Shown: positions 26,176 through 60,309 of the stretch, in pieces | How positions within the stretch are numbered: position 1 is the first letter of the stretch | Layout of the letters: each line of letters starts with the position of its first letter | Assembly: GCA_965240325.2 (NCBI GenBank) | Contig: OZ251229.1 | Location: forward strand, 682,001-746,000 | Source of the DNA: Rebecca billardiae RCC1528 | Lineage: Eukaryota > Protista > Haptophyta | Length of the DNA stretch: 64,000 nucleotides | Direction: 5' to 3' | Position numbers and translations under genes: made by a program | The notes under the pieces: generated by a model | Told to the model about the DNA's origin: nothing | Databases searched by the model: none | The model's input: only the letters and a program-made list of their open reading frames with translations

Positions 26176-27150
26176 TACGGTGCCGCCACCCCACCCCGCC
26201 TCCCCAGCCCTCCCCCAGCCCTCGTCCCTGATTCTCAGTCGAGCCACGTCGAGCCACATCGAGCCACATCGAGCCACGTCGAGCCACGTCGAGCCACATC
26301 GAGCCACGTCGAGCCACCCCACCGCCACCCCACCCCGCCTCCCCAGCCCTCCCCCAGCCCTCGTCCCTGATTCTCAGTCGAGCCACGTCGAGCCACATCG
26401 AGCCACATCGAGCCACGTCGAGCCACGTCGAGCCACATCGAGCCACGTCGAGCCACCCCACCGCCACCCCACCCCGCCTCCCCAGCCCTCCCCAGCCCTC
26501 GTCCCTGATTCTCAGTCGAGCCACGTCGAGCCACATCGAGCCACATCGAGCCACGTCGAGCCACGTCGAGCCACATCGAGCCACGTCGAGCCACCCCACC
26601 GCCACCCCACCCCGCCTCCCCAGCCCTCCCCCGAGCCTACGACTCATCATCCCTGATTCTCAGACGAGCCACGTCGAGCCACGTCGAGCCACATCGAGCC
26701 ACATCGAGCCACGTCGAGCCACATCGAGCCACGTCGAGCCACGTCGAGCCACGTCGAGCCACGTCGAGCCACGTCGAGCCACGTCGAGCCACATCGAGCC
26801 ACGTCGAGCCACGTCGAGCCACATCGAGCCACGTCGAGCCACCCCACCGCCACCCCACCCCGCCTCCCCAGCCCTCCCCAGCCCTCGTCCCTGATTCTCA
26901 GTCGAGCCACGTCGAGCCACATCGAGCCACATCGAGCCACGTCGAGCCACATCGAGCCACGTCGAGCCACGTCGAGCCACGTCGAGCCACGTCGAGCCAC
27001 GTCGAGCCACGTCGAGCCACGTCGAGCCACGTCGAGCCACCCCGCCGCCACCCCACCCCGCCTCCCCAGCCCTCCCCAGCCCTCCCCAGCCCTCCCCAGC
27101 CCTCCCCAGCCCTCCTCCGAGCCTTCGTCATCCCCGATTCTCAGTCGACC
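26176..27150 (+). repeat. Left terminal inverted repeat: C-rich blocks alternating with TCGAGCCAC(G/A) 10-mer arrays
   Basis: The block ccgccaccccaccccgcctccccagccct recurs at about 26183, 26322, 26461, 26599, 26847 and 27045, with 10-mer arrays between them. Confidence 0.92.
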
Positions 27151-27319
27151 CCCGCCGAGCCTTCGGTGCCACCACCCCGCCGAGCCTTCGGTGCCACCAC
27201 CCCACCGCCATTCCCAATCCCGCCGCCCCACCCCAACCCCCGCCGCCGCCGCCACGCCGCCACCGCGTTTATTTCGGTGCAATATAAAATCTTACGCACA
27301 TGTATAATACTGACCTATC

Positions 27320-27970
27320 ATGCCCTGGCGTGTGACCTGCGAAGCACGCACCGGAGCGCCCGGCTTTGCCGATGACGAGGAATACGAGTCACGCTGGTTC
27401 GTGGACCTCACGGACGCACTCCGCCACTTGATCCATTTCAGCCCCTCGGAGCGCTGGCACTGCGTCCGCCACGCCACGGTACGCTTTGAGTACTCGGGCG
27501 GTCGGGCATGCAAATATAGTGACGGACTCATTTTCTACGGCAACAGCCTCAGGGACCTCGGCGTGAGCGAGCGCACCTTTGACGACGCGTTCGAGCAGGC
27601 GCTCGGCATCAAGCCGGTCACGCTGGAGCGGAAGAACAACGTGTTTGTCCCCATCGACACGAACGCTTCCTCCGGCCGTCATCGCCTCACGCAAGAGACG
27701 ATCAAGCAAAAGTCGAGGCGCTTGCTTCCTCCGGAGGAAGAATTGGAGGCGCACAGAGAGGAGAACATCGAGTGCTCCGAATGCAACCGCGAGGTGCCAT
27801 TCGAGCTCTTCGCCTTCCGCCGCCGCCGAGGCGGCAGCGTGACGCGCACGATGAACTGTTACGAGTGCCACCTCGAGCAGGTGCGCATCCGCCGGGCGCG
27901 CTTCGTGAGCAAGGGCGCATCCTCGGTGGAGCGCGACGCGCAAATAAAGTCGGCGGCGCGCGCCGCCTAG
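27320..27970 (+). CDS. Viral hypothetical protein with a C-terminal C4 zinc-finger-like motif
   Basis: 216-aa ORF after an AT-rich spacer; CSEC...F...CYEC. Confidence 0.7.
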   Translation: MPWRVTCEARTGAPGFADDEEYESRWFVDLTDALRHLIHFSPSERWHCVRHATVRFEYSGGRACKYSDGLIFYGNSLRDLGVSERTFDDAFEQALGIKPVTLERKNNVFVPIDTNASSGRHRLTQETIKQKSRRLLPPEEELEAHREENIECSECNREVPFELFAFRRRRGGSVTRTMNCYECHLEQVRIRRARFVSKGASSVERDAQIKSAARAA

Positions 27971-28033
27971 GGAAAAATCGGCGATTCGCGCCGCCTAGGG
28001 AAAAATCGGCGATCCGCACAACCTAGGGAAAAA
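27959..28033 (+). repeat. 28-bp-period tandem repeat upstream of pPolB
   Basis: cctagggaaaaa at 27966, 27994 and 28022. Confidence 0.85.
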
Positions 28034-28104
28034 CGTACGCGCGTTATTCTGGCGCCAAATAAAAATGTCAACCACCATCATAACACAAAATCCTCGCTTG
28101 TAGT

Positions 28105-31100
28105 ATGATGAACGTTGATGAGCTCATCCGAAATGCCCGCGCGCGCCTCAACGAGCGCACCCCTCGCATCGAAATTCCGATCACGAGTCGCCTAGGCGCT
28201 ACCGCAGCAGCTCGCACGAACTCCATCGCGAGAGCATTCCAGTCTCCGCCGGGCACCCCCAGCTCGACGCCAGCCACCGGCCTCCGCTCCACCAGCCGCT
28301 CGCTCAGCCAATACACGCAGGAGCAGCTCGCGCGCATCCGCCAGTTCCAAGACGCATTCGAGGGCTTCGGCATGAGTGCCCCGCAAGTCCTCGCCGGCAT
28401 GCTCTACCAAGATCAGTGGAGCGGTAAGCGGCGCAAGATCCCCTCCAACGACAGGCAGCTCGACGCCCTCGCCGAGCGCGTCGCCAGCAAGATTTCCGGC
28501 CCCGCGCCCCGCCGCCGCCGCACGCCCGCCCGCCGCGCGCCCGACCGCGACCGCGCTGCGAGCCTCCTCCAGCGCTTCACTCGCTCCCAGCTCGCAAACC
28601 GCCTGACTGACGCCCAGCGCACGCGGCTGGAAGTCGATCGGAACCTTGCCATGCTCTCCACGAGCATGCAGGATCGGTATTTCGAGTTTATCGACCGCAA
28701 GCGCTTTATCATGCCGCTCAAGTGGATTCTGCACGAGAATCTTGGGCTGCTCCTGGAGCAGCAGCTGAACTACACGCCGAGCCAGCACCACCTCGGAGCG
28801 ATTCTCCAGACGATTAATGCGACTATTGACGCCCGCCTGCAGGAGATACCGTACAGCCGGCTCTCGATGCACATTCGACTCGAATCGATATTCGCGCACG
28901 CCAAGGTGACGATTAGCAAGACAAACAAGAACGGAAAGGCCGTCGAGACGTCCGAGTTCACCTGGGAGGCGGACCCCTTCGCGGTGACCATGCGTGAGGT
29001 CGCTGAGCTCAAGACCCGCGAGGAGATTAGGCTCCACGCGCGCGCCTTCAAGAACCAGAACGACCAGTACAATCCGACCGCCTTGAACAAGGGCTTCTAC
29101 GAGTTTGGCGTGGTCACCGCGGGCGCGAAGGAGCTCGACAACTCGACGGCGCGCCTGGTCATCGACAAGGGCAACCCCGAGGACGTGCAGCAGGTCAAGA
29201 CCAAGGTCGCGGAGATACTCGCGCTCGTCACCTCCACGAGCAACCCGCAGTACAGCGCGCGGCGATTTGTGGGCCTCCTCAGCTTTGACGTGGACACCTA
29301 CCCGATCAATGCCGTCCGGCAGCAGGGCTCGTCCTACGTCAAGCTCCCGAAGAAATTTGGCGGCGGAAGCAAGGGCCTGATCAATCCCGAGAACAAGACC
29401 GACAACAAGTGCTTCCTGTGGGCGTCGCTCATGCACTTTGCGAACGCAGATGGCGCCAAGAAGCAGGAGCGCACCAGCACGCTCAAGCGCTACGAGTCGA
29501 TGATCACCTGGCCGGAGGAGGTCAAGTTTCCATTCGACTGCACCGACATCCCGCGCCTCGAGGAGGCCAACCCCACCCTCACCTGGAACGTCTTCTCGCT
29601 CGAGCAAGTCAAGCGCTCCTCGGAGGACCATCACGAGCACCCCGAAGACACGGATGAGTTCAAGTACCCCATCGTACCGATTCACACGACCACGCCGGAG
29701 AAGTACCGCGAGCGCACGCTCATCAACATCCTCGCGTATGAGGACCACTACGTCTTCGTCAAGGACCTGGACAAGCTCCTCAGCGAGCGTGCTCACAACT
29801 GCGCGCACTGCCCCATCTGCACGCGCCGCTTCAGGACCAAGGCAATCCGCGATCAGCAGACCGCGCAGTGCAACGCCAACTGGCGCCACCTGTTTCAGCC
29901 GTGGACGCTCGACGAGATTAAGAGCCAGGCGAGGACGCCTCAGGAGCTCAAGCGCACCGAGACGGACATCACCTACTCGCAGGACACCTCCATCGTGTGG
30001 AAGCCGGTGGTGGCGGTGGCCGACTTTGAGGCGGTCAACACGCAAGTCAACGGGGAGACGCATCAGAAGGCGCAGTCGGTGAGCCTCAAGTTTGACTTCC
30101 AGGACGGCATGGACGCCCCTGACATGGATTGCAGCTTCATGGGTCCGGATGCGGGTGTGCGGTTTTTGCATGCGCTGCTCGACGCCACCCCCAAGATCCG
30201 CGACGCGTGCTCGCGCTACAAGGACGATTTTTCAAAGGTCACCGCGGCCGACCGCGAGCACTTTGAGGCGAGCGAGACGTGCCACTTTTGCGGCGAGGCT
30301 GCCTTCGCCTCGAGCGCGGAGATTGCTCGCGCCGAAGCGGAGTACGAGCTCAAGTCGAAACTCGCGCCGGAGGAAAAGGACGAGTTGAAGCGCGCGCTCG
30401 AGGAGGTCCGAGCCAAGCGCAAGGTGCTCGACCACTGCCACTGCACGGGCCTCTACCGCGGCGCGGCACACTCGCGGTGCAACCTCAAGCACGACACGCC
30501 GAGCCTCATCAGCAGCATACCGGTGTACTTTCATAACATGTCCTACGACTCGCAGCTCATCATGCAGGCGCTCTCCGACGTGAGCGTTCAGGCGCGCATC
30601 AAGGAGCACAAGGTCCGCATGAACGCCATGGTGATCAATTCCGAGCGCTTCAAGACGCTCGAGATCGGGGCCTTCCGAATCCTCGACTCGATGACGTTCC
30701 TGGGTGGAAGCTTGGCGGAATCTCTGAAGAATCTACCCTCAGAGGACAAGCACTCGCTCCGCCGGGCGGCCAACGAGCACGCCGAGCGCTTCGGCAAGGA
30801 CCCGGATGCGGTCTTCGAGGCTTTCAAGCACAAGCAAGTGTTCCCGTACGAGTTCGATTGGCACCAGCACCTCGACGAGCCCATCAGCGCAGACCCGAAG
30901 TTCTTCGGCTCCAAGCTGAGCGAAGGCTACGGCAAAACCGACGAGGAGCTGGAAGAGCGCCTGGAGGCCGAGCAAAAGGAGCTCGAGGAGAGCCTGCCCG
31001 AGCGCATGAGCCGCCTGCAGGAGGCAACCGGCATCGTCACGTGGCGCGATCTCCACGATCTGTACCTCAGCATTGACGTCTGCGGGCTCCAAGATTGCAT

Positions 31101-32691
31101 GCGTGCCTTCCGCAAGACCTCGATGAACACGTACGGCCTCGACCCGGCGTACTGCATATCCAACTCGCAGTTCGCGTGGAAGGCCATGCTCAAGCTCACG
31201 GGCGTGAGCCTCGAGAGCATCCCCACGAGCGACCTGTACGAGCACGCCGAGTCCGGGCTCCGCGGAGGCATGTCGATGGCACGCAACCGCATCGCGCGCG
31301 CGAACCACCCGGATCTTCCCGAATATGATCCCGCCAAAGAATTCTCCGCGATCCACGACTTTGATGCCAACGCACTTTATGCCTCGGTGATGTCGTGGAA
31401 GCTGCCGACGGGTGGGTATAAGGATGTCGATCCGGAGCGCTTCGATGCCAACGATCCGCGCTACGGCGGGCTCCCGACGCGACCGAATCAGCCGTGCGAG
31501 GAGTGGCAGGGCGACGTGGGGGCGCTCGTGACGGTGGATATCGACTACCCTGACCGCTTGCACGACCTTCACAGCGACTACCCGCTGCTCCCCGAGGTGA
31601 TGGAGGTGCCCGATGAGATGCTCTCGCCTATGCAGCGGGGCAAGCGGGCCGTCAAGACCACCAAGCTGATTGCGCATCTTGGCTCCCGCAAGAACTACAC
31701 GCTCAACGTCACGATGCTCAAGTTTGCGCTGGCGCAGGGGCTCGAGCTCACCAAGGTGCATCGGGTCGTCGAGTTCGACCAAAGCCCGTGGCTGCGACCG
31801 TGGGTGGACCTCAACACGCGGCTGCGCAAGCAGGGCAAGAACGCCTTCGAGGAGGGGTATTTCAAGCTCATGGTGAATGCGTGCTTCGGCAAGACGATGG
31901 AGCGAATCTATCACCACACGCAAGCGCGATTCATTGATAACCGAGCGGCATTCACTCGAGCCATGACGAGCCACCGGGCGCTCACATACAAGCCTATCGC
32001 ACCCGAGTTTGCGCTCGTGACGATGAGCAAGCGCGAGTACGTGCGTGACAAGCCGATCTTCGTGGGCGCCTCGATCCTCGATTTTTCCAAATTGTGGATG
32101 TATACGTTCCTGTATAATGTGGTCTACCCCACCTTCGGTCCGAAGAACGCTCGATTGCTTGGGACGGACACCGACTCGCTGATTATGAATTTCCGGGCGC
32201 CCTCGCACGAGGCGTATTTGGAGAAAATGCTCAGCATCCGCGACGAATGGCTGGACATGAGCAAGTTTCCGGAGGGACACCCGCTCTTCACGGACGCCAA
32301 CCGCAAGACGCCGGGGTTTTTCAAGGACGAGCTCGGCGACAATCTGGCGGTGGCAGTGGCCTTTGTGCGGGCGAAGACCTACTCGATCAAGACGCTCAAG
32401 AGCCTCGAGGACGAGCTTGAGGATGTCCACCGAGCCAAGGGTGCCCCCTCCCGCTGCGTGCAAAATAGCCTCACGCACGACGACTACGAGACGACGATTT
32501 TGGAGAGTTCGAGCGTCAGTGCGCAGTACCACGATCTGCAATATAAAAATCACAACATTGTTTTCAGCCGGCGCGTGAAGAAGGTGCTCGATTGGGTCGA
32601 CGACAAGGGCTATCATCTCTCGGCCGAGCGCACGATTGCCCTCAATCACTGGCGCATCAGGGCCGGCGCCCTCGCGGCGGCGATGGACTAG
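28105..32691 (+). CDS. polB: Protein-primed family B DNA polymerase (Polinton/adintovirus type) with an N-terminal TP/OTU-like region and an inserted endonuclease-VII-like domain
   Basis: Exonuclease motifs ADFEA, FHNMSYDSQL, YLSIDV. Polymerase motifs DANALYASVM, KLMVNACFGK, GTDTDSL, GFFKDE, RAKTYS, RAKG. Endo VII motif CHFC...DHCHCTGLYRGAAHSRCN. N-terminal GSSYVKLP..INPEN..DNKCFLWA..HY. Confidence 0.96.
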   Translation: MMNVDELIRNARARLNERTPRIEIPITSRLGATAAARTNSIARAFQSPPGTPSSTPATGLRSTSRSLSQYTQEQLARIRQFQDAFEGFGMSAPQVLAGMLYQDQWSGKRRKIPSNDRQLDALAERVASKISGPAPRRRRTPARRAPDRDRAASLLQRFTRSQLANRLTDAQRTRLEVDRNLAMLSTSMQDRYFEFIDRKRFIMPLKWILHENLGLLLEQQLNYTPSQHHLGAILQTINATIDARLQEIPYSRLSMHIRLESIFAHAKVTISKTNKNGKAVETSEFTWEADPFAVTMREVAELKTREEIRLHARAFKNQNDQYNPTALNKGFYEFGVVTAGAKELDNSTARLVIDKGNPEDVQQVKTKVAEILALVTSTSNPQYSARRFVGLLSFDVDTYPINAVRQQGSSYVKLPKKFGGGSKGLINPENKTDNKCFLWASLMHFANADGAKKQERTSTLKRYESMITWPEEVKFPFDCTDIPRLEEANPTLTWNVFSLEQVKRSSEDHHEHPEDTDEFKYPIVPIHTTTPEKYRERTLINILAYEDHYVFVKDLDKLLSERAHNCAHCPICTRRFRTKAIRDQQTAQCNANWRHLFQPWTLDEIKSQARTPQELKRTETDITYSQDTSIVWKPVVAVADFEAVNTQVNGETHQKAQSVSLKFDFQDGMDAPDMDCSFMGPDAGVRFLHALLDATPKIRDACSRYKDDFSKVTAADREHFEASETCHFCGEAAFASSAEIARAEAEYELKSKLAPEEKDELKRALEEVRAKRKVLDHCHCTGLYRGAAHSRCNLKHDTPSLISSIPVYFHNMSYDSQLIMQALSDVSVQARIKEHKVRMNAMVINSERFKTLEIGAFRILDSMTFLGGSLAESLKNLPSEDKHSLRRAANEHAERFGKDPDAVFEAFKHKQVFPYEFDWHQHLDEPISADPKFFGSKLSEGYGKTDEELEERLEAEQKELEESLPERMSRLQEATGIVTWRDLHDLYLSIDVCGLQDCMRAFRKTSMNTYGLDPAYCISNSQFAWKAMLKLTGVSLESIPTSDLYEHAESGLRGGMSMARNRIARANHPDLPEYDPAKEFSAIHDFDANALYASVMSWKLPTGGYKDVDPERFDANDPRYGGLPTRPNQPCEEWQGDVGALVTVDIDYPDRLHDLHSDYPLLPEVMEVPDEMLSPMQRGKRAVKTTKLIAHLGSRKNYTLNVTMLKFALAQGLELTKVHRVVEFDQSPWLRPWVDLNTRLRKQGKNAFEEGYFKLMVNACFGKTMERIYHHTQARFIDNRAAFTRAMTSHRALTYKPIAPEFALVTMSKREYVRDKPIFVGASILDFSKLWMYTFLYNVVYPTFGPKNARLLGTDTDSLIMNFRAPSHEAYLEKMLSIRDEWLDMSKFPEGHPLFTDANRKTPGFFKDELGDNLAVAVAFVRAKTYSIKTLKSLEDELEDVHRAKGAPSRCVQNSLTHDDYETTILESSSVSAQYHDLQYKNHNIVFSRRVKKVLDWVDDKGYHLSAERTIALNHWRIRAGALAAAMD

Positions 32692-32737
32692 CGCGTTTTT
32701 CTCGGCTCAAATAATTTTCTCGCGCACTAGTATTAAA

Positions 32738-33253
32738 ATGGCCCCCTGCGATTTTGACGTTTCCGCTCGCCACGATTGTCGCTGTCGCGATTGCCGCGAT
32801 TGCCGCGATTACCGCGAGATGCGCACCGAGTTCGAGGCCCTCAAGGAGCGCGTGGTGGCTCTCGAGCGTGTCGTCGTCGCCAAGCCGCCCAAGCCGAGCG
32901 CGCGCCCCGAGTCGCTCACGGCGGCATCAATAACCGCCATCGAGAGTCACTTTGGCGGTATCGAAGTGGTCAACGCCAAGTTCTTCAACGAGCACTGCGT
33001 CGTGGGTAGGCTCAGCGAGCCCTTCGTGGAGGGCCCCACTGCGGGCATGGCACAATCGTTCAAAATTACCCGCAAAATTGTCGCTATCAGCGAGGCGTAC
33101 GGCGAGCCGGGTCGGGCGCCGATCTCTCAGTCGGCTACGCCCGCAAGCCTTCGGGACGTGTTGTGGCCGCGCTCGTGGTCACGTCAGCGAGGCGGAGCTT
33201 CGCCAAGCGCGCCAAGCGCGCCGATGTTTGCAGATTCTGATGGTGAGGACTGA
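32738..33253 (+). CDS. Viral hypothetical protein (Cys-rich N-terminus, short coiled coil)
   Basis: ATG in tattaaaATG context; CRCRDCRDCRD followed by EFEALKERVVALER. Confidence 0.65.
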   Translation: MAPCDFDVSARHDCRCRDCRDCRDYREMRTEFEALKERVVALERVVVAKPPKPSARPESLTAASITAIESHFGGIEVVNAKFFNEHCVVGRLSEPFVEGPTAGMAQSFKITRKIVAISEAYGEPGRAPISQSATPASLRDVLWPRSWSRQRGGASPSAPSAPMFADSDGED

Positions 33254-33348
33254 CTGGTCTGAGCACCACGCCATCACACAATTTGGAAGGATCAAAAACA
33301 CTCGAAGGTGCTCGCTCGGAGCGCTTCCGAGGCTTTGGCGGCATGATA

Positions 33349-33999
33349 CTATTTTGAGGGGTTCTTTTTGCGAGCGGACGACCGCACTGATGGCCGCAGT
33401 AGCCGGATACCCTCGCTGCGGATACCGGTGATAGGGCCCGTGAATCGCGCGGTGATGACCTGCGCACGGCGATTGGCGTTCGCACGCGTGGTCACGTTCG
33501 CGCCGGCGGGGATGACATTGTTTTGCTCGACGTCTGGGTCGCGCCCGCCTTGGCGTACGACCTTCCCAGCCTTGTCAAACACGTACCATTTTCCGTCGAC
33601 GGCCCGGCGCGCGCGCGCCAGTAACCGGGCGACGTTCTCTTCGAGCATTGCCGGATTTGAAATTTGGCGCCACTCTTTATCGAGCGGCGGCTTGACGAAT
33701 CCAAAACCGGGGTTTGTGAGCGCGAGCAGGCGCTTCTCGGCGGGGAAAACCAAATTCGACGACACGACTAAAAACCCGACTAGCCTGAACGAATTCCCGG
33801 GCTTGGCGTAGGGCATCATATGGCGATAGCCTTTAAAGGTTCGACTCACAATATTAGCGGTGAGCCCCATTTTGAACAAACGGTTAGAAGTGTCCCACCC
33901 AGGGGCGATCACATATAAGCCCGCCGCCGGCTTCCCTCCCGGGGCGCGCTTGAGCAAATTCGCGTTTTGCATGGCCTTTTGGAATTGCGATGATTTCAT
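33349..33999 (-). CDS. GIY-YIG superfamily (T5orf172/MUG113-like) protein with a basic tail
   Basis: GLYVI...FKMGLT...SR...AEKRL...KEW pattern. Confidence 0.65.
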   Translation of the reverse strand: MKSSQFQKAMQNANLLKRAPGGKPAAGLYVIAPGWDTSNRLFKMGLTANIVSRTFKGYRHMMPYAKPGNSFRLVGFLVVSSNLVFPAEKRLLALTNPGFGFVKPPLDKEWRQISNPAMLEENVARLLARARRAVDGKWYVFDKAGKVVRQGGRDPDVEQNNVIPAGANVTTRANANRRAQVITARFTGPITGIRSEGIRLLRPSVRSSARKKNPSK

Positions 34000-34008
34000 C
34001 TTGGCCTT

Positions 34009-34281
34009 TTAGCTAATTGTTACTCCGATTTTACTCGCATTCGTAGCGAGCGACTTGGAGTCTCCCCACAGCAAAATTCGGCTGTAATAGATGCCCGACT
34101 CAGGGTCGTCCCAGCCCTTATCGCGGCGATGGCGCGCAACCCACGCCGATTTCTTCTTCGGGTCGCCATGATCGATGTACGTCGAGCCGCCACGCGCGCC
34201 AAAGTGGAGCGTCCGACCACCCGGCGAAGTCAGCATGTATCGTTTGTCTTTGCGCGTAGACCGTTTTAGGCGGCGATTCAT
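34009..34281 (-). CDS. Tlr6F-like (DUF5754-like) small protein of PLVs, virophages and NCLDVs
   Basis: STRKDKRYM...LHFGARGGSTYIDHGD..KK..W.ARH...GIYYSRILLW. Confidence 0.8.
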   Translation of the reverse strand: MNRRLKRSTRKDKRYMLTSPGGRTLHFGARGGSTYIDHGDPKKKSAWVARHRRDKGWDDPESGIYYSRILLWGDSKSLATNASKIGVTIS

Positions 34282-34313
34282 ATCTCATGCCTTATTAAAG
34301 AGGTCCTTATTAA

Positions 34314-36464: not shown

Positions 36465-36505
36465 ACAGTCCCATAGAGCCAAAAATCCGTAGTACCGGTA
36501 CCATA

Positions 36506-37150
36506 ATGATGCGAGCCGTACCCACTGTATCGACCGCCGAAGGCAAAGCGCGCGTCGCGAAAGCGGCCTGGGACGCCGGCGCTACGCTCGCCCGAGATCG
36601 CAAGTTCCTCATCGAGGCAAGCTATATGAGCAAGGCGGCAGCCCGACCGCACCTAGCCAAGCGCGGGTACCGACTTGATGAGCGCCTGTCGGATGAAGCG
36701 GACAAAGTAGCCGTGCACATCGCGAGCGGTCGGCCCGTCGTACTTTTCCGAGGCTCGGCGTCATTCGCCGACTGGGCCGTGTCGGACGTCCTGATCGCGC
36801 TGGGATTGAGCGCCAAGGACCCACGCCACGCGCGCGCGCGCAAGCTGGTGGAGATCGTCAAGCGCAAATACGGCCAGCCCGCCGCTGCGGTGGGGCACTC
36901 TCTGGGTGGACACCTCGCGGAAGAAAGCGGCGCCTCGCAGATTCACACGTCACAAAAAGCGGCCGGTCTAAAAGATATCGGAAAGGCTTTGCCGAAAAGC
37001 CAATTCGATACCCGCTCGCCGGGTGATATAGTGAGTGCGCTGTCGGTTACGCAGCGCGGTGGGCGCCGGCAGACCCTCGGGCGTGCCAGCTTTGTGGACG
37101 CTCTACAGAGCCCAGCGTTGTTTGCCTTGAATCAGCACCGCGCTCGGTAA
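36506..37150 (+). CDS. Alpha/beta-hydrolase (lipase class 3-like)
   Basis: VLFRGS, nucleophile elbow GHSLGG, DIVS and a C-terminal His. Confidence 0.85.
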   Translation: MMRAVPTVSTAEGKARVAKAAWDAGATLARDRKFLIEASYMSKAAARPHLAKRGYRLDERLSDEADKVAVHIASGRPVVLFRGSASFADWAVSDVLIALGLSAKDPRHARARKLVEIVKRKYGQPAAAVGHSLGGHLAEESGASQIHTSQKAAGLKDIGKALPKSQFDTRSPGDIVSALSVTQRGGRRQTLGRASFVDALQSPALFALNQHRAR

Positions 37151-37220
37151 TCCGCGCTCGGTAATTCTTAGCGCTCGGTAATCCGCGCTCGGTAATTCGC
37201 GCTTGGTAATTCTTAGCGCA
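37141..37220. repeat. Short (g)ctcggtaat repeats between convergent viral genes
   Basis: Five copies (one reads cttggtaat) spanning both stop codons. Confidence 0.75.
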
Positions 37221-37506
37221 AGTAACGATCCGCCCGGCTGGCGGCCGCGTCCGCGCGTCCGGCGATCTGACGCCCGCGATTCACCGCTCGCCGCGCGGCT
37301 CCAGTGTAGGGGCTGGCGACGTCGCCGAGGCCCTCCGTGCGATCGATTTCATTCAAAAATTGGTTTACGTCGCCGCCGATTTTGTCAACGCACGGCTTCA
37401 GGTGGTGCGCCGCCGAGCTGATGGGGCGGCCGAGTCGACGCGCTGTGTTTGCCAGCCCGCCGAGCCGACCGCGAATGCCTCGCGTGAGTCTGCCGAGAAA
37501 TGACAT
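37213..37506 (-). CDS. Small basic virion-associated protein (amphipathic N-terminus)
   Basis: 97 aa immediately downstream of MCP; MSFLGRLTRGIRGRLGGLANTARRL. Confidence 0.65.
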   Translation of the reverse strand: MSFLGRLTRGIRGRLGGLANTARRLGRPISSAAHHLKPCVDKIGGDVNQFLNEIDRTEGLGDVASPYTGAARRAVNRGRQIAGRADAAASRADRYLR

Positions 37507-37538
37507 ATCGGTGTATAATTATCATATTTTTTTATTTT

Positions 37539-38852
37539 TTACACGGCGAACTGGAGCTGGTTCTGCGCGACCTCCATCATGACGTCGTGCAGCGCCCAGG
37601 CATGCCACGTAAACGCAGCTGGGTGGTTGCTGTCGGCCTCGAAAATGGCGTGCTCCGTGTCCAGACGGCGACCGTCGAAGAGAATGTCGGACTGCGAGAA
37701 TGCCGACGTATTGAATGCGATGGCAAAAGCTGAGTTCGCGAAGCGCGCGCCATTCACCTTGGAGGCGTAGTCGGCGACGCCAAGCGCGTTGAACGCCCGC
37801 ACGAGCTCCGCGCGCGTCTCGGCAGCGCCATTCGTCGCGCTGACCGGCTGGTCTGGCACGAGCGTCGAGCCAATGCGCAGCTGCCACTTGGAGATGGCCG
37901 CGCGAGTGCGCAGCGTGACATCGCCCGCGTAAGCATTGCTGTTCGCATCCGGATAGGCGGCGATGATAATCGTGTTGACGCTCGCGAGGCGGAAGGGCAG
38001 CTGCCAGCTCGTCGCAGTGTTGGGCGATACGGAGTGCTGCGCGTGGAGGTAGCTCATCGACGGAACGTAGAGGTGGTCGAGGCTGCGCGCAATCTTGGTG
38101 TAGGCCGAATCCGAGAGCAGCACCGTGCCCAGCTGCATCTTGACGTCCTGGATCGATGGCATAGCCCCGGGATCAATCGTGTAGATACCCCAGTCCTTCG
38201 TCTGCGCGAGGTGAATGTCCACGCGGAGGCCTTGGTGCAGCTCGGAGATGGGGATGGCCTTGCCGCAGAGCGCGCCGAACACGTACACAAGCGGGAGGCA
38301 CACCGTGAGCAAGCCGCCATTCGCGATGACCGCACCCTTGGGCACGTTGAGAGCATTGTTGATCGTCGCCTGCGACAGAGTCGCGGCGGTGACATCATAA
38401 TCGGCGCTACCGAGCATCGAGGCAGTGGAGAAGCACGACGAAGGCCCCGACTGGAAATCCAGCAGGAGATTGTGCAGTAGGCCCGCCTTGCCCGCCGAGG
38501 CAATCATCTGAGAGCCGTGATAGGCGTCGATGCGCTCGATGAGGCTGTAAGCGCTCTGCGAGAGAGTCAGAGAGGTGCCAGAGGTGTTGTTAATCGTGAA
38601 TTGAACGACGCTCTGGCTGGGATCCATCATAGCGCCTGGTGTGCCCGTAGGCAGATCGAACTGCACCACCTGCCCCGGAGAGAATGACGACGCCGGTCCG
38701 GCATAGACGGTCGTGCGTTTGTACGTAGCACCGACGGCCACGGGCTTGGGGTTCGCAAAATCGTAATACATCGGTGCCGTCTCCTCCTGCTCAAGCACCA
38801 TCGCCTCGTCCGCGCGAATGTCGTTCTTCATGTACCGCCCGGCGTACGCCAT
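37539..38852 (-). CDS. Major capsid protein (double jelly-roll, PLV type)
   Basis: 437 aa, beta-rich. SFSPGQVVQFDLP...MDPSQSVVQFTI...SLIERI, IPISEL..LRVDIHL, WQLRIGSTLVP, FAIAFN. Next to mCP and the ATPase. Confidence 0.85.
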   Translation of the reverse strand: MAYAGRYMKNDIRADEAMVLEQEETAPMYYDFANPKPVAVGATYKRTTVYAGPASSFSPGQVVQFDLPTGTPGAMMDPSQSVVQFTINNTSGTSLTLSQSAYSLIERIDAYHGSQMIASAGKAGLLHNLLLDFQSGPSSCFSTASMLGSADYDVTAATLSQATINNALNVPKGAVIANGGLLTVCLPLVYVFGALCGKAIPISELHQGLRVDIHLAQTKDWGIYTIDPGAMPSIQDVKMQLGTVLLSDSAYTKIARSLDHLYVPSMSYLHAQHSVSPNTATSWQLPFRLASVNTIIIAAYPDANSNAYAGDVTLRTRAAISKWQLRIGSTLVPDQPVSATNGAAETRAELVRAFNALGVADYASKVNGARFANSAFAIAFNTSAFSQSDILFDGRRLDTEHAIFEADSNHPAAFTWHAWALHDVMMEVAQNQLQFAV

Positions 38853-38889
38853 TTATGTGTGTGTGTTTGGCTCCGACATTTTTTTTTTT

Positions 38890-39651
38890 TTACACAACGA
38901 CAAATTTGAGTACGACCGAGATTTCGGCGCCGTTGAGATCCACTTCAGCCATCGTCTCAGAGTCGAGGAGGCGCAGATCGAGATTTTGCACTGAGCGGCG
39001 GTTCGTCTCGAGGAGGTCGTCTGTTTGGCTCTGGTAAGCGAGGACTTGGCCGAAAGCGACCGTATTTTGGATGGTGACGAGGATATTGCTCGTCGAGCCT
39101 GAGCTCAAGGTCGAGTCGCGCGACTTTACGTCGAGGCCTTCGCACACGAGGTGGTAGCCGCGCGGAATCAGATCGACCACGGCAGGCGCCTCGATGCTCC
39201 CAGTCGCTGGCACGATGAGATCCGACTGCGCTAGACCCAAGACGCGCGTCGCAGTGGATGAGCCCTTGATCGTGATTGGGTTGGCGCTCGAATTGGCAAA
39301 CGTGAATTTACCGCGCGACGAATCAAAGGTCACCGTGAGCGTGGCGTTGACCGGCGAGCCCGCAAAGAGCGTGTCCAGCGCGGTGGCGAGCGAAGTGGCT
39401 GTGTAATTCTTGGGTGGGATCGTCATAGTGGTGTCGCCCCAATTCCCGGCGAGACCAATCGCGCCGTTGGAGCCGTCGACCGCATAACGGCACGACGGGA
39501 AGCTTACCGACTCGACGGCGACGAGAATGCTCTCATCGTGGGTGGCCATGATCGGATGACTCAGCGTAAAGTCAGCGGCGCTCGTCATCGTCCGTCCCAG
39601 CGGGAAGCGGTCCGCCTGAGCCGTGTGCAGGTGAAGCCGGTGAGTCGTCAT
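38890..39651 (-). CDS. Minor capsid protein (penton, single jelly-roll)
   Basis: FTLSHPI..VAVESVSFP..Y, IPPKNYTATSL, RVLGL, NILVTI, VQNLDLRLLD..VDLNGAEISVVLKF. Start placed at MTTHRL. Confidence 0.85.
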   Translation of the reverse strand: MTTHRLHLHTAQADRFPLGRTMTSAADFTLSHPIMATHDESILVAVESVSFPSCRYAVDGSNGAIGLAGNWGDTTMTIPPKNYTATSLATALDTLFAGSPVNATLTVTFDSSRGKFTFANSSANPITIKGSSTATRVLGLAQSDLIVPATGSIEAPAVVDLIPRGYHLVCEGLDVKSRDSTLSSGSTSNILVTIQNTVAFGQVLAYQSQTDDLLETNRRSVQNLDLRLLDSETMAEVDLNGAEISVVLKFVVV

Positions 39652-39793
39652 TGACAGGGGCGGAGATATTTGGGGCGACGATTGGGTCGATGATTGCGTC
39701 GATGATCTCATCGTCCAAGCCAGGACCCATCCGCTTGCGCGCGATGAATCTGGCGGCCGCCTCCCACGAAAAATCAAACATGGCGGGGTCCAT
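39572..39793 (-). CDS. Small acidic hypothetical protein overlapping the mCP start
   Basis: 73-aa ORF with aaaaATG start context like the other viral genes. Confidence 0.4.
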   Translation of the reverse strand: MDPAMFDFSWEAAARFIARKRMGPGLDDEIIDAIIDPIVAPNISAPVNDDSPASPAHGSGGPLPAGTDDDERR

Positions 39794-39839
39794 TTTTCGA
39801 TCAAAATGGAGTGTCTATTATCTCTAGAACAGATATAAA

Positions 39840-40262
39840 ATGGACGAGGCACCGCCGCCGCCGCCAGCGCTCGCCGTGCCGATCAAGCAGCCCAAAGCAC
39901 GCACGGCAGCGCAGATCAAAACCACCGAGGTGATGCGCTTGGCCAAGCTGCGAAACACGTACACCGAGTACGCCCAGCGGTACGCCAATCTCGCGACCCA
40001 AGAGCAAGCCAAAATCGACGAGTTGAACGCTACTGTGCCAGTGCCAGAGCCCCCGCCAATCAAGCGCATGACCCCGCCGCCGCCGCCGAAGGAGCCCGAC
40101 GAGGACACGCTGGTGCTCGAAGACGACCAGCCAATCGAGTCTACGCGAGCGCCACCACCACCGCGGGCGCCGTCGCGACCGCCGTCGCGACCGCCGCCGA
40201 GGGCACCACCGAGTGCGCCGCCGAGTGCGGCACCGCCGCAAAGAAAACTGAGGTACATCTAG
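39840..40262 (+). CDS. Proline-rich viral hypothetical protein
   Basis: ataaaATG context; 140 aa, directly upstream of the ATPase. Confidence 0.65.
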   Translation: MDEAPPPPPALAVPIKQPKARTAAQIKTTEVMRLAKLRNTYTEYAQRYANLATQEQAKIDELNATVPVPEPPPIKRMTPPPPPKEPDEDTLVLEDDQPIESTRAPPPPRAPSRPPSRPPPRAPPSAPPSAAPPQRKLRYI

Positions 40263-40277
40263 AAAGCTCTATCTAAA

Positions 40278-40982
40278 ATGCAGATTGCCGAAGAGGCAAA
40301 TCAAGTCGATCTGAGACTGCCGCGCATCACAGCGGACAAGCCATTAAAGGTGGGTCTACCCGAGCCACTGCCCAACTTGACCTTCCACTGGGGCGTGTTT
40401 GGCCCCCCACGCAGTGGCAAGTCGAGTCAGGTGGCGGGCTTGATCACTGGCCCCTACCGAGGCGTTTTTGGAAATGTTATCTGGTGTGCACCGCAGACAT
40501 CCATGGACTCGTTCGCCAAATCGCCGCTGCGCGACTTGGAATTTGTGTACAACGAATTTCATGGCGCGGTCCTAGACGAAATCATCGACATCGCCGAGGA
40601 GAATGCCGCCGGCGGTCGTCCAACGCTGCTGGTGATTGACGATTTCGCGGCCAGCCTGCGCGACGCAAACCTGCAAAAGGCCTACGCCAAGATGGTGCAG
40701 AATCGACGGCACATCCGGCTTTCAATCATTGTGATCGCGCAAGGCTATATGAGCGTGCCGCTGAATGTGCGCAAGCTTTTTTCAAATATTACCATGTTTC
40801 GGCCGAACAATTCCCGCGAGCTCACCGCGCTGCACTCCGAGCTTATCCCCATGTCAAAGGTGGACTTTATGGGCGTCTATCACTACATATTCGGAAATGA
40901 GCGTCCGCACACGTTCATGTTCATGGACGTTGATGGTGGCATTTTATATCGAGAGTGGAATCGGTTGCGTATTAAAAATTAA
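40278..40982 (+). CDS. Genome-packaging ATPase (A32-like, FtsK/HerA superfamily)
   Basis: Walker A GPPRSGKS, Walker B LLVIDD, and the RH motif NRRHIRLSIIVIAQ. Confidence 0.93.
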   Translation: MQIAEEANQVDLRLPRITADKPLKVGLPEPLPNLTFHWGVFGPPRSGKSSQVAGLITGPYRGVFGNVIWCAPQTSMDSFAKSPLRDLEFVYNEFHGAVLDEIIDIAEENAAGGRPTLLVIDDFAASLRDANLQKAYAKMVQNRRHIRLSIIVIAQGYMSVPLNVRKLFSNITMFRPNNSRELTALHSELIPMSKVDFMGVYHYIFGNERPHTFMFMDVDGGILYREWNRLRIKN

Positions 40983-40999
40983 TCCGTGCTAGCAATAAC

Positions 41000-41779
41000 A
41001 TGGCGACTGCAGTCCATCACCACACATTCCGCGATACGGTGCCAGCGCGAGTGACTCACTTCACGCTGAACGGCACGCCGTATGCCGGCGCCATGCACCA
41101 CCGTGGCAAGAAAGACGGCTGGTGGTCAGGCTTGCATCCAGGCCCAAGCTCGCGCAAGCTCGCTCACCACAAGAAGCCCATGATATTACCCGCGCTGGTC
41201 ACGATCGCCAGGCGAGGCCCGCCTACCAAGACCAAGACCAGCTTTGGGCGCGTCGCCCCCGGCGTGTACGACCTCGGCCAGTTCACGACGGATGAGGGCC
41301 ACTACGATGCGAAGCACCTAAAATTCCCGCAACGCGATGCCAGCGGTCAGCCAATCTCGCGGCTGGTGGTGCGCTCTCAGCCGGCGCCTACTATGACGAG
41401 CTCTGACTCCGCCAATCGTCCTGCGGGGAGACCCGCGGCGGCGCCCCCAAGACCCATACCTGCGGTGCCAATGAATCCCGCACTCGCTACGCCCATGAAT
41501 CCAGTACTCGCAATGCCCACATCTACTGGAGCAAGTCGATCGTCGACTACGTCGCGTGTTGACGCTGAGCTACCCATGTTCCGCGACGAAACTCGGACTA
41601 GCGACAGATATACAGCTCAAACTCGCCTTGATGTATTCTTTAAGCGCTTCTTAGAAAAAGCCATTGAGAACGGCTGGAGTACCGAAGAGTTTCATAGAAC
41701 GCTGGCCTCTCACCTGAAGATACAACTGCCTCTTTTGAGGGAGATCCTGGATGACAAAGCTGTTTCTTTCAAAGTCTGA
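41000..41779 (+). CDS. Viral hypothetical protein with a His-rich N-terminal domain
   Basis: 259-aa ORF; THFTLNGTPYAGAMHH...WSG.HPGPSSRKLAH. Confidence 0.65.
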   Translation: MATAVHHHTFRDTVPARVTHFTLNGTPYAGAMHHRGKKDGWWSGLHPGPSSRKLAHHKKPMILPALVTIARRGPPTKTKTSFGRVAPGVYDLGQFTTDEGHYDAKHLKFPQRDASGQPISRLVVRSQPAPTMTSSDSANRPAGRPAAAPPRPIPAVPMNPALATPMNPVLAMPTSTGASRSSTTSRVDAELPMFRDETRTSDRYTAQTRLDVFFKRFLEKAIENGWSTEEFHRTLASHLKIQLPLLREILDDKAVSFKV

Positions 41780-41932
41780 CGGGGGGCTTCGTGGTCTACT
41801 TAACCAAATCTTAGTCGCTGTTATGTGGTGTGCTCTGCTGTTTGCGCTTGTAGCCGGAACCAGCATTGGCCAGTTCATTTGGATTGCGTTCTTGATGCCT
41901 GCTCCTAAGGCGATACCGCTAAAGAAGCCTTC

Positions 41933-42250
41933 TTAGCGGAAGTGGTACACGATTACCTTGCCCTTGATGGCCATGCCGCGCACCGCATCGGCTACCTCGA
42001 ACACAGGCGTATCGTACAGTTTGATGTAGGCCTCAGCATCGAGCAGCTCGATGTCGATGAGATCAAAGGTGCGAGTGCGCTGGAGGCGCTTGCTCAGGTA
42101 GCCGTCGCGAAGCGTGATGGTCGTCTTGGTCTTCTTGTTGCGCAGGTCGCTCAGGTACTTACCCGATGGCTTGCGCACCTCCGTGCGCCGGCCCTCGTCG
42201 AGCCACGTCGAGCCGCGGTCGAGCGGGAGCGAGACCGTTGGGGTAACCAT
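41933..42250 (-). CDS. Small protein, possibly ASCH/PUA-like
   Basis: LDEGRRTEVR..Y...L...ITLRDGY resembles the GxKxxExR..GY pattern of ASCH domains. Confidence 0.45.
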   Translation of the reverse strand: MVTPTVSLPLDRGSTWLDEGRRTEVRKPSGKYLSDLRNKKTKTTITLRDGYLSKRLQRTRTFDLIDIELLDAEAYIKLYDTPVFEVADAVRGMAIKGKVIVYHFR

Positions 42251-42261
42251 CGTGCGGTGCG

Positions 42262-42613
42262 TGGCTTCGTGGGGCTCCGTGAGCGCGCTTTTCACCTAGG
42301 CCGCTTGTCTTTAACTACGAACCGCCACGGGCTTCGTGGGGCTTCGTGGGGCTCTGTGAGGGCGCTTTTTCACCTAGACCGCTTGTCTTTAACTACGAAC
42401 CGCCTTCGTGGGGGCTTCGTGGGGCTTCGTGGGGCTCTGTGAGGGCGCTTTTTCACCTAGACCGCTTGTCTTTAACTACGAACCGCCTTCGTGGGGGCTT
42501 CGTGGGGCTTCGTGGGGCTCTGTGAGGGCGCTTTTTCACCTAGACCGCTTGTCTTTAACTACGAACCGCCTTCGTGGGGGCTTCGTGGGGCTTCGTGGGG
42601 CTCTGTGAGGGCG
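42262..42613. repeat. ~83-bp tandem repeat, about 4 copies, subterminal in the virus
   Basis: ttttcacctag(a/g)ccgcttgtctttaactacgaaccgcc...ggggcttcgt recurs with an 83-bp period. Confidence 0.92.
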
Positions 42614-42825
42614 TCCGACGAAACCTTAGTGACGCGGCCAGGGCGCAAGTGTTTCGTCGTCAGCCACGAGGGGCCGAGGGAATGCTCAAAAATGAGTTCG
42701 GTACGGTGGGGCTTCGTGGGGCTTCGTGGGGCTTCGTGGGGCGGCTCGGGGCTCGTGGTGGGATGGTGGCTCGTGGGTCGTCGTGGGTCGTCGTGGGTCG
42801 TCGTGGGTCGTGGGCGGGGTGGGGC

Positions 42826-43129
42826 GGCGGCGGGGTGGCGGTGGCGGGGGTCGACGTGGCTCGACGTGGCTCGATGTGGCTCGACGTGGCTCGATGTGGC
42901 TCGACGTGGCTCGATGTGGCTCGACGTGGCTCGACGTGGCTCGACTGAGAACCGGGGATGATGAGTCGTAGGCTCGGGGGAGGGCTGGGGAGGCGGGGTG
43001 GCGGCGGGGTGGCTCGATGTGGTGATGGGTGGCTCGACGTGGCTCGACGTGGCTCGACGTGGCTCGACTGAGAATCAGGGACGAGGGCTGGGGAGGGCTG
43101 GGGAGGCGGGGTGGGGTGGCGGCACCGTA
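42826..43129 (-). repeat. Right terminal inverted repeat, shorter than the left
   Basis: Reverse complement of the left-end units: (C/T)GTGGCTCGA arrays, ctgagaatcagggacgagggctgggg, ending ggcaccgta. Confidence 0.92.
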
Positions 43130-59005: not shown

Positions 59006-59100
59006 CGTCTGGGTTGGAGGACGGTCCGAACCTGGAGGACGGTTTTGGACTTTTTCCAGGCCGATCCTGGAGGATCGGCGCCAGTCCTTGAGGATCGGCC

Positions 59101-60180: not shown

Positions 60181-60309
60181 CCAATCTTGTGGGTGTACGA
60201 TGCACCGCCGTCTCCTGCAGAATGCGCCAGCCGTACTCGCAGATTCTTGATCCAGCCTGCGCGCGCGGATAGCGCGAGCGAGCGTGGCATTGGGCGCCGA
60301 CGCGGGTGC

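Follow-up and report, generated by a model that had tools for sequence, protein, structure and literature searches.

A ~17-kb Polinton-like virus genome with no profile-detectable integrase inserted in a choline transporter-like gene of the haptophyte Rebecca billardiae

The route by which Polinton-like viruses (PLVs) that encode no integrase get into the chromosomes of their hosts is recognized as an open question (PMC9356565). It is raised here by a repeat-bounded, virus-like unit of ~17 kb at positions ~26160 to 43145 of the window, a 64,000-nucleotide stretch of contig OZ251229.1 from Rebecca billardiae RCC1528. A sequence-only reading of this stretch had described a complete endogenous PLV and had proposed a virus lineage that integrates precisely, with an enzyme supplied in trans or with an unrecognized one of its own. 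The locus is useful for the question, with both junctions in one well-conserved host exon, a recent-looking insertion, and unbroken genes; relatives in a second alga add termini that are exactly preserved and a tandem junction at which the tips meet. In combination, the locus and these relatives constrain the mechanism and yield a short list of candidate integration proteins.

The element is a PLV genome of ~17 kb that looks recently inserted and intact. An inverted terminal string of 23 nt occurs in exactly two copies in the window (positions 26173 to 26195 and 43110 to 43132; chance expectation, 0), and the terminal arms are built of arrayed 10-bp units and longer subrepeats, extending ~1.1 kb on the left and ~0.3 to 0.9 kb on the right. 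The inverted symmetry continues 16 to 18 nt past positions 26176 and 43129, at which the element had earlier been delimited, and reaches 26158 and 43147. In this extension 14 of 16 positions match, and pairs of random host 16-mers matched as well in 25 of 2,000,000 cases (chance, ~1e-5); each boundary of the element is therefore fixed only to within 18 nt. The terminal features are as follows.

26158 to 26175: outer 18 nt of the inverted symmetry on the left, 16 of 18 positions complementary to 43130 to 43147; it represents either the end of the left terminal repeat or one of the halves of a palindromic target
26176 to 27270: left terminal repeat array, a 10-bp repeat in six higher-order units with additional 10-nt and 25-nt repeats, starting with the same 40 nt as the right end
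42263 to 43129: right terminal repeat region, 83-nt repeats (4.3 copies), 10-nt repeats, and two terminal units
43130 to 43147: outer 18 nt of the inverted symmetry on the right, pairing with 26158 to 26175

Inside the element are 14 tightly packed open reading frames (ORFs), all unbroken, which are referred to below by their first coordinate. They cover 93% of positions 27320 to 42295, which leaves no room for a hidden gene, and every one shows GC3 > GC1 > GC2. The genes that have relatives contained no stop codons or frameshifts (0 breaks). The GC content was 0.61 in the element, compared with 0.655 and 0.669 in the flanks. The earlier description of a unit of 17 kb bounded by terminal inverted repeats (TIRs), with intact genes and with ORFs tiling nearly all of the nonrepeat sequence, was accordingly upheld on each point. 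A linear genome of 14 to 40 kb with TIRs and without the Polinton protease and rve integrase is one of the marks of a PLV, and the element has this form. Its genes with family matches or conserved positions are listed below.

28105 to 32691, plus strand: protein-primed DNA polymerase, pPolB (PF03175, E = 1.2e-7)
34009 to 34281, minus strand: small protein of family DUF5754 (PF19058, E = 9.7e-17)
34314 to 36464, plus strand: LamG/concanavalin-like protein of 716 aa with two domains (PF13385, E = 2.5e-21, two stretches)
36506 to 37150, plus strand: lipase-like alpha/beta-hydrolase with a GHSLG motif at residue 130 and weak Pfam and PHROG esterase/lipase matches
37213 to 37506, minus strand: conserved 97-aa ORF downstream of the major capsid protein (MCP) gene, with 78% identity to the equivalently placed L001:2390-2683
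37539 to 38852, minus strand: double jelly-roll MCP, with 435 relatives (AlphaFold pLDDT, 83.6)
38890 to 39711, minus strand: putative penton (minor capsid) protein, 54% identical to the MCP-adjacent gene in locus L001
40278 to 40982, plus strand: A32-like genome-packaging ATPase with PF04665 and PHROG terminase matches, Walker A and B motifs, and 59 IMG/VR relatives

The double jelly-roll fold of the MCP was confirmed in the predicted structure, for which the top Foldseek match was PBCV-1 Vp54 (E = 4.7e-18, probability 1.0), followed by the capsid proteins of SGIV, Sputnik, and mavirus. ORF 38890, the start of which was set at the first ATG fitting its relatives, is putatively penton-like, with homologues that adjoin MCP genes in 35 IMG/VR loci and a position next to the MCP gene that is kept in all relatives. 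The ATPase scored 20.9 bits against PF04665, slightly below the cutoff of 22.8 bits, and its Diacronema lutheri homologue matched with an E value of 4.7e-10. Homologues of the lipase-like protein were present in nearly all relatives, and DUF5754 occurs in PLV capsid modules (15 IMG/VR relatives and D. lutheri). The 97-aa ORF occupies the sole large gap between the other ORFs, and the LamG protein likely has an attachment or fiber role. The pPolB, MCP, packaging ATPase, lipase, and LamG genes named in the sequence-only reading are thus borne out by profiles, motifs, and the MCP fold; its penton gene is a candidate on the grounds of conserved position and of MCP-adjacent homologues in relatives, and no profile library named its "Tlr6F-like" gene.

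The polymerase has a complete set of Exo I to III, Pol A to C, and KxY motifs. Its N-terminal ~410 aa are unique, and relatives P0158 to P0160 align from residue ~414 on, with 27 to 30% identity. A PDB sequence search with pPolB returned nothing significant, and an IMG/VR scan returned no relatives. Between Exo I and Exo II there is an HNH/His-Me-like insert with a CxxC pair and a DHxH...N-type motif, a stretch with no Pfam match and no significant PDB sequence match. In Polintons of oomycetes and nematodes, polymerases of the pPolB2 class are known to have an insert of HNH type within the exonuclease domain (bioRxiv 10.1101/2023.08.22.554363).

No rve, DDE, tyrosine recombinase, or adenain family was found among the ORFs of the element (Pfam at E ≤ 0.1, PHROGs, and NCBIfam), and no ORF matched a Pfam peptidase family, adenain-type proteases included, at E ≤ 0.1. 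Every gene of the rve-bearing elements L011 and L012 was compared to the window by tblastn, with matches to the polymerase and ATPase only, and a hidden Markov model (HMM) of their rve proteins found nothing in the six-frame translation of the window. Nothing was found there at E ≤ 10 with filters off by an HMM of a Yrec-like family (A12) from free relatives. An alphavirus E3 match at 58893 to 60290 was discarded as a 16-residue match with no single stretch over the threshold. No integrase gene was found anywhere in the 64-kb window. At the level of sequence profiles, by which ORFs 27320, 32738, 39840, 41000, and 41933 and polymerase residues 1 to 410 were judged, the element is shown to carry no detectable integrase, in agreement with the earlier statement that rve/DDE integrases, tyrosine recombinases, and an adenain-type protease are absent.

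The element splits a coding exon of a host CHT1-like (CHT1/SLC5A7-like) choline transporter gene, the two halves of which are intact and collinear with CHT1.

25484 to 26157, plus strand: 5' part of the host CHT1/SLC5A7-like gene, residues 30 to 227 matching human CHT1 residues 17 to 214 (phmmer against PDB, E = 3.8e-28) and covering positions 1 to 167 of the Pfam SSF profile
43148 to 44686, plus strand: 3' part of the host CHT1/SLC5A7-like gene, matching human CHT1 residues 238 to 509 (phmmer against PDB, E = 6.5e-29)

Flanking direct repeats of at least 4 nt were not found, except for parts of a palindromic GTATAC that belong also to the inverted repeat. This GTATAC is present at both ends of the element, within the inverted symmetry, which runs 12 nt further. 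Reading it as a 6-bp duplication removes 16954 nt and puts the host ORF out of frame, whereas the host ORF stays in frame if nothing was duplicated (16980 nt) or if the duplication is a 2-bp TA (16956 nt). This comparison presumes that the poorly conserved loop contains no intron, and its chance value is only about 1 in 3. The readings that fit the host frame are thus no target duplication or 2-bp TA. An rve-type staggered cut at the insertion site is unlikely, and insertion of the element by its very ends is supported.

Taken jointly, these observations are read as an intact, integrase-less PLV that was inserted by end-joining into a chromosomal break, an account to which we give an even chance. 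The full-length linear genome would have entered the chromosome tip first at both ends, within the choline transporter coding exon. Its two ends would have been joined to a chromosomal double-strand break, with at most 2 bp of the target duplicated or none, and the break may have arisen spontaneously or may have been cut by the element's T5orf172/GIY-YIG-like protein or by the HNH-like insert of its polymerase. The searches and models show what the element is, that it is intact, and that profiles detect no integrase in it; we infer both the end-joining step and any role of these nuclease-like domains. From the earlier proposal of an enzyme supplied in trans or unrecognized, the precise insertion of the ends is retained, but end-joining into a break fits the junctions at least as well as such an enzyme does. 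The features of the locus, together with the termini of the D. lutheri relatives, argue against both an rve-type 6-bp staggered cut and recombination of a circular intermediate.

An integrase supplied in trans is unlikely. An rve integrase or tyrosine recombinase from a resident PLV, a Polinton, a retroelement, or a coinfecting giant virus would have recognized the TIRs, and several observations are consistent with this: the closest pPolB relatives sit in rve-bearing elements, with the rve gene of L011 directly upstream of the polymerase, where the window element has ORF 27320; GTATAC at both junctions can be read as a Polinton-type 6-bp duplication; and the terminal nucleotides are identical at three D. 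lutheri junctions (two with the host and one head to tail). However, the 6-bp reading conflicts with the host frame, and GTATAC is itself palindromic, with inverted symmetry continuing past it. The window contains no such enzyme, and host data from Tetraselmis, in which comparable PLVs are integrated, are without any RVE or YREC (PMC9356565).

An integrase of the element's own, too divergent for profiles and located in ORF 27320, ORF 41000, another ORF, or the N-terminal 410 residues of the polymerase, is unlikely. The remaining ORFs are as follows.

27320 to 27970, plus strand: 216-aa protein with a C-terminal CxxC...CxxC zinc ribbon and coding-like composition
32738 to 33253, plus strand: 171-aa coiled-coil-like ORF with a coding-like GC3 of 0.73
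33349 to 33999, minus strand: protein with a predicted T5orf172-type (GIY-YIG superfamily) domain, conserved among the capsid-module genes of pavlovophyte PLVs
39840 to 40262, plus strand: 140-aa proline-rich protein (GC3, 0.77), weakly similar to the ORF that L001 has at this position
41000 to 41779, plus strand: 259-aa protein with a proline-rich middle and an N-terminal motif that is conserved beside the D. lutheri ATPase gene
41933 to 42295, minus strand: 120-aa ORF (GC3, 0.84) on the inner margin of the right repeat region

Six ORFs and the polymerase N terminus have no assigned function, and all are coding-like. The Yrec-like family of free relatives was missed by Pfam and matched in PHROGs only with an E value of 9e-4, so divergent recombinases can hide, and the precise termini of the relatives would suit such an enzyme. 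On the other side, only ORF 27320, ORF 41000, and the polymerase N terminus have the length of a recombinase core, and their hhalign probabilities against rve were 0.1%, 0.35%, and <1%, respectively; the Yrec-like HMM was blank. The weak PHROG matches of ORF 27320 were to endonuclease VII/HNH families, in their zinc part (E = 6.5e-5), and a PDB sequence search gave nothing significant. It was rejected as an endonuclease VII, since the zinc ribbon alone matches and the catalytic DHxH His motif is absent. In D. lutheri, an ORF of 83 aa next to the helicase keeps this zinc ribbon, the only part of ORF 27320 that is shared with D. lutheri. ORF 41000 shares only ~45 residues with D. lutheri, and its middle is disordered and proline-rich. 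A 12-residue resemblance of this ORF to the E motif of rve was rejected as a sign of a degenerate integrase, given its 0.35% probability and a disordered linker that leaves the fold no room. ORF 32738 had no relatives and no family match (Pfam, PHROGs, and NCBIfam), and ORF 41933 had no family match (PHROGs and NCBIfam). The sole lineage-conserved ORF of this kind, ORF 33349, folds like T5orf172/GIY-YIG proteins in its predicted model.

ORF 33349 has homologues in L003, L008, L009, L015, L016, and P0161 to P0163. Its low-confidence model (pLDDT, 62.8) matched many viral T5orf172/BRO proteins in Foldseek (probability, 0.97 to 1.0; E = 8e-4 to 2e-2), as well as Slx1 (probability, 0.89; E = 0.095). 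This ORF is most likely the gene that had been called GIY-YIG-like, although the fold support is weak; among the five ORFs that the sequence-only reading had singled out for fold comparison, it is the one for which a fold was suggested, and that fold is not an integrase. Of the catalytic residue set (two Tyr, Arg, Glu, and Asn), the family keeps the first Tyr, an Arg, and a Glu, but the position of the second canonical GIY-YIG Tyr is occupied by Phe or Leu, which makes nuclease activity doubtful.

Random end-joining usually trims ends. The identical termini at the three D. lutheri junctions look more like the product of a dedicated, end-recognizing enzyme than of random end-joining. That pavlovophyte PLVs, the window element among them, insert tip first by means of a dedicated enzyme outside the rve integrases and the tyrosine recombinases, with the T5orf172/GIY-YIG-like protein and the HNH-like insert plus terminal protein as candidates, is an idea that we regard as improbable; if true, double jelly-roll viruses would have a mechanism of integration that is new for them.

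Very unlikely is a deletion derivative, a nonautonomous copy that lost its integrase and relies on complete sister copies. The rve genes of the polymerase relatives would suit such a loss, but the tiled interior has neither a gap nor a pseudogene remnant, and the genes with relatives are all unbroken. Moreover, the nearest capsid relatives, in D. lutheri, are also without an integrase (no Pfam integrase family among the 20 ORFs of the D. lutheri element), which makes the absence a lineage trait rather than a private deletion. An assembly artefact, in which a free viral genome was misjoined into a host contig, is highly improbable. Assemblers can be misled by repeats at the ends of an element, and part of the difference in repeat number between the two arms may stem from misassembly. 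Against an artefact, the two junctions lie in the same host gene and at a single point of its protein, with order and orientation correct, and relatives are integrated in other haptophyte assemblies.

As a surprise at the level of a new lineage, the sequence-only reading does not hold. For integrated, pPolB-bearing PLVs of the TVS group in Tetraselmis, neither RVE nor YREC was present in any of the host data, and their mechanism has been called unknown (Chase, Desnues & Blanc 2022, PMC9356565). Integrases are encoded by most endogenous PLVs but not by all of them (Bellas et al. 2023, PMC10120064), and in cryptophytes the dominant integrase is found in only ~51 to 85% of the complete PLVs of a cluster (PMC12220804), so that a sizeable share shows none. 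The element thus adds a clean case to a question already known to be open and represents no new kind of element.

Some searches for further relatives returned little. IMG/VR scans by MCP and by MCP alignment gave no relatives. A 35-sequence MCP alignment was too divergent for pattern scans. In metagenome scans, the terminal 25-mer was not found, and a 4-sequence MCP alignment gave only two short, uninformative contigs. PDB sequence searches with the MCP profile and with the Yrec-like profile gave nothing significant.

The closest capsid relatives are integrated copies in D. lutheri and Pavlovales sp. CCMP2436, one locus of which is a head-to-tail tandem; the "Dialut" elements of D. lutheri have been placed among PgVV-type PLVs (Roitman et al., bioRxiv 10.1101/2022.07.28.501842). 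These elements have a syntenic capsid module in common with the window element (MCP, 30 to 31% identity; A32 ATPase, 39%; lipase, 45%), together with the penton, DUF5754, a T5orf172-like protein (37 to 38%), and the N-terminal motif of ORF 41000. Like the window element, they have subrepeated TIRs, high GC content, and no Pfam-recognizable integrase. They differ in length (18.7 kb), in replication by a 1,289-aa AAA_30 helicase protein instead of pPolB, and in a giant F5/8-type-C protein in place of the LamG protein. Polintons/Mavericks and L011/L012 resemble the window element in pPolB (27 to 30% identity over ~1,100 residues), the A32 ATPase, TIRs, and a length of 15 to 20 kb. Unlike Polintons/Mavericks, the window element has neither an rve integrase nor an adenain-type protease that profiles detect, and a target duplication of 6 bp is a poor fit; its capsid genes are unrelated to those of L011/L012 at the tblastn level. 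The element is an example of a module swap, with a pavlovophyte capsid module and a Polinton-type polymerase.

PgVV/Gezel-type and other aquatic PLVs, represented by 59 IMG/VR contigs (L017 to L075), have the ATPase (27 to 30% identity), MCP (~26%), penton, lipase, and DUF5754 in common with the window element. In contrast to it, these contigs are AT-rich (median GC content, 0.39), and 0 of 59 carried pPolB or the window element's ORFs without assigned function. A conserved Yrec-like gene of ~305 aa, absent from the window element, was found in 20 of the 59 contigs (A12 HMM, 20 loci at E < 1e-18); a weak PHROG integrase match and residue spacing suggest that it may encode a tyrosine recombinase. 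The Tetraselmis TVS-group PLVs, likened here by their description, have a green alga as host and are likewise integrated, with a protein-primed polymerase and no RVE or YREC.

The 64-kb window contained exactly two copies of a 23-nt terminal string, inverted relative to each other, at 26173 to 26195 and 43110 to 43132 (chance expectation, 0). The sequence-only reading had placed a 17-kb unit bounded by terminal inverted repeats at 26176 to 43129, and the restriction of this string to the two ends showed the unit to be real. The terminal arms consisted of arrays of a 10-bp unit set within longer sub-repeats, with six higher-order units (~1.1 kb) on the left. The right arm had two such units, followed further inward by 83-nt repeats and additional 10-nt repeats. 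The two arms were identical over the first 40 nt inward of these boundaries. Beyond the boundaries, 16 of the next 18 positions still matched in inverted symmetry, which extended to 26158 and 43147. Because outward symmetry of this kind is rare among random host 16-mers (25 of 2,000,000 pairs reached the observed 14 of 16 matches), the earlier coordinates are off by no more than 18 nt, and the element probably ends slightly outside them. If positions 26158 to 26173 and 43132 to 43147 were host DNA rather than repeat tips, the preinsertion site would have been a 34-nt near-perfect palindrome in a coding exon, which would itself need explaining. The GC content was 0.61 in the element and 0.655 and 0.669 in the flanks.

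The interior of this Polinton-like virus (PLV) was tiled by 14 open reading frames (ORFs), all with GC3 > GC1 > GC2, as in real genes of the host genome; antisense ORFs lacked that signature. The genes previously listed as a protein-primed polymerase, major capsid protein (MCP), packaging ATPase, lipase, and LamG protein were all confirmed, and the penton is a putative assignment from conserved position and homology; no library match named a Tlr6F-like protein. The polymerase (1528 aa; PF03175) retained the Exo I to III, Pol A to C, and KxY motifs. The MCP had 435 database relatives, and its predicted structure (pLDDT, 83.6) matched PBCV-1 Vp54 (E = 4.7e-18) as well as the capsid proteins of SGIV, Sputnik, and mavirus. 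The ATPase was of the A32 type with Walker A and B motifs, the lipase-like hydrolase carried GHSLG, one protein contained two LamG domains, and a DUF5754 protein was also encoded. Genes with relatives aligned over their full length, and as none contained a stop or frameshift, 0 breaks were counted. Intergenic tandem repeats, possibly regulatory or origin related, lay at three positions, listed here in window coordinates with two of the genes.

27959 to 28033: tandem repeat of a 28-nt unit (2.7 copies), directly upstream of the polymerase gene
28105 to 32691: polymerase
37139 to 37212: tandem repeat of a 14/31-nt unit that separates the lipase gene from the 97-aa ORF
37213 to 37506: conserved 97-aa ORF, 78% identical to its counterpart in the nearest relative (L001) and occupying the only sizeable gap between genes
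42263 to 42613: tandem repeat of an 83-nt unit (4.3 copies), just within the right end of the element

Comparison of every ORF with Pfam (E ≤ 0.1), PHROGs, and NCBIfam returned no retrovirus-like integrase (rve), DDE, tyrosine or serine recombinase, or adenain (Polinton-type maturation protease) family. The nearest polymerase relatives (P0158 to P0160; 27 to 30% identity) resided on long contigs with PF00665 rve genes, one of which was directly upstream of the polymerase gene. When all genes of these two rve-bearing elements were compared to the window by tblastn, the polymerase and ATPase matched and nothing else did. A hidden Markov model (HMM) of the relatives' rve integrases had no match in the six-frame translation of the window, and hhalign of the rve profile with ORF 27320, ORF 41000, and the polymerase N terminus gave probabilities of <1% each. 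At the level of sequence profiles, these results agree with the sequence-only reading that the element encodes no recognizable integrase, recombinase, or adenain-type protease.

Free aquatic relatives were gathered via the ATPase as 59 IMG/VR contigs, which had the ATPase, MCP, penton, lipase, and DUF5754 genes in common with the element. A conserved ~305-aa protein, not recognized by Pfam and linked to integrases only weakly by PHROGs (E = 9e-4), was found in 20 of the 59; from its invariant Arg...Arg-His...Tyr spacing, we infer that it would fit a tyrosine recombinase. With filters off, an HMM of this family had no match in the window or the closest loci. Since Pfam misses this putative PLV recombinase, absence at the profile level is not proof for the orphan ORFs. 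One example of the family is at L021:476-1390, and the copies on contigs L040 and L041 are ~420 aa long, that on L040 bearing an N-terminal GIY-YIG domain. In alignment A11, which drew 22 ORFs from nine IMG/VR contigs of free PLVs, one PLV encoded a papain-family cysteine protease (Pfam E = 1.6e-67) together with its I29 propeptide, and a second encoded an N6/N4 DNA methylase.

ORF 33349 was conserved beside the capsid genes across the pavlovophyte lineage. Its model (pLDDT, 62.8 overall and 70 to 90 in the core) matched the GIY-YIG nuclease Slx1 (probability, 0.89) and many viral T5orf172/BRO-type proteins (probability up to 1.0; E = 8e-4 to 2e-2). The fold comparison suggested for this ORF therefore returned a T5orf172/GIY-YIG-like fold and no integrase fold. 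Nuclease activity is uncertain because the second tyrosine of the canonical GIY-YIG motif is replaced in the family. Within the polymerase, residues 726 to 793 (window 30280 to 30483), between Exo I and Exo II, carried an insert in which a CxxC pair precedes a DHxH...N-type His-Me/HNH-like motif; the insert was degenerate in P0159 and P0160. HNH inserts have been published for oomycete and nematode Polintons with polymerases of the pPolB2 class (bioRxiv 10.1101/2023.08.22.554363). ORF 27320 lacked the catalytic histidines of endonuclease VII, and its similarity to a small Diacronema lutheri ORF beside a helicase gene was limited to a CxxC...CxxC zinc ribbon (residues 152 to 183; window 27773 to 27865). 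This ribbon recurred as a stand-alone ~83-aa ORF (L015:20593-20925) directly downstream of the D. lutheri helicase gene, so the zinc ribbon accompanies the replication gene of either type.

The ORFs to the left and right of the element aligned to residues 17 to 214 (E = 3.8e-28) and 238 to 509 (E = 6.5e-29), respectively, of human CHT1 (SLC5A7), placing the insertion within a coding exon, at a poorly conserved loop, with both halves of the gene intact. The intact halves point to a recent insertion. Other genes in the window were ordinary host genes (alpha-kinase, homoserine dehydrogenase, class I tRNA synthetase, and mitochondrial carrier), and the rest of the 64 kb contained no integrase, tRNA, or Rfam match. 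No direct repeat of at least 4 nt flanked the element; the sole exceptions were parts of the palindrome GTATAC, which also belongs to the inverted repeat. Homology anchors both parts of the host ORF, so the length of the insert together with a single copy of any duplication should be divisible by three. A 6-bp duplication (16954 nt) failed this test, while a 2-bp TA duplication with ends at 26176 and 43129 (16956 nt) and an insertion without duplication at 26163 and 43142 (16980 nt) both passed. Taken alone, the test, which has a one-in-three chance value and presumes an intron-free loop, weakly disfavors a Polinton-type rve event.

The closest capsid gene (74% identical) was on a 3-kb read-assembly contig. 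The next closest were proteins annotated in Pavlovales sp. CCMP2436 and D. lutheri, and the host is on this basis probably a pavlovophyte haptophyte. The D. lutheri element (18.7 kb) had its capsid module entirely in common with the window element but replicates via a large helicase protein rather than a protein-primed polymerase; the window element's pairing of capsid and polymerase modules is typical PLV mosaicism. No integrase family was detected among 20 D. lutheri ORFs tested, and two independent host junctions began with the same terminal nucleotides, so the lack of an integrase and the exact termini are traits of the lineage. Two D. lutheri copies (L008 and L009) lay head to tail with a period of 18,706 bp, and at their junction (L009:4499-5708; center, 5104/5105) the terminal repeats met with 0 nt between them, forming a perfect palindrome. 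The tandem resembles linear genomes joined tip to tip, or else a concatemer produced by replication.

Both repeat tips of the window element abut host DNA, indicating that the substrate was a linear genome rather than a circular form that recombined internally. In our preferred reading, to which we give roughly even weight, the ends of this genome were joined into a chromosomal break, perhaps made by one of the element's own nuclease-like domains. A dedicated enzyme supplied in trans is unlikely, and one concealed in an orphan ORF is slightly less likely still; for either, the exact D. lutheri termini are the main argument. The linear substrate is evidence against the classical tyrosine recombinase route.

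Integrated, polymerase-bearing PLVs of Tetraselmis have neither rve nor tyrosine recombinase genes inside or outside the elements, and their mechanism was called unknown (Chase et al. 2022, PMC9356565). "Most" endogenous PLVs encode integrases (Bellas et al. 2023, PMC10120064), and in cryptophytes the dominant integrase is present in ~51 to 85% of a cluster's complete PLVs (PMC12220804). The D. lutheri PLVs were already listed among PgVV-type elements (Roitman et al., bioRxiv 10.1101/2022.07.28.501842). Given the published integrated PLVs without integrases, the window element is an unusually clean, fresh example of an already-known type.
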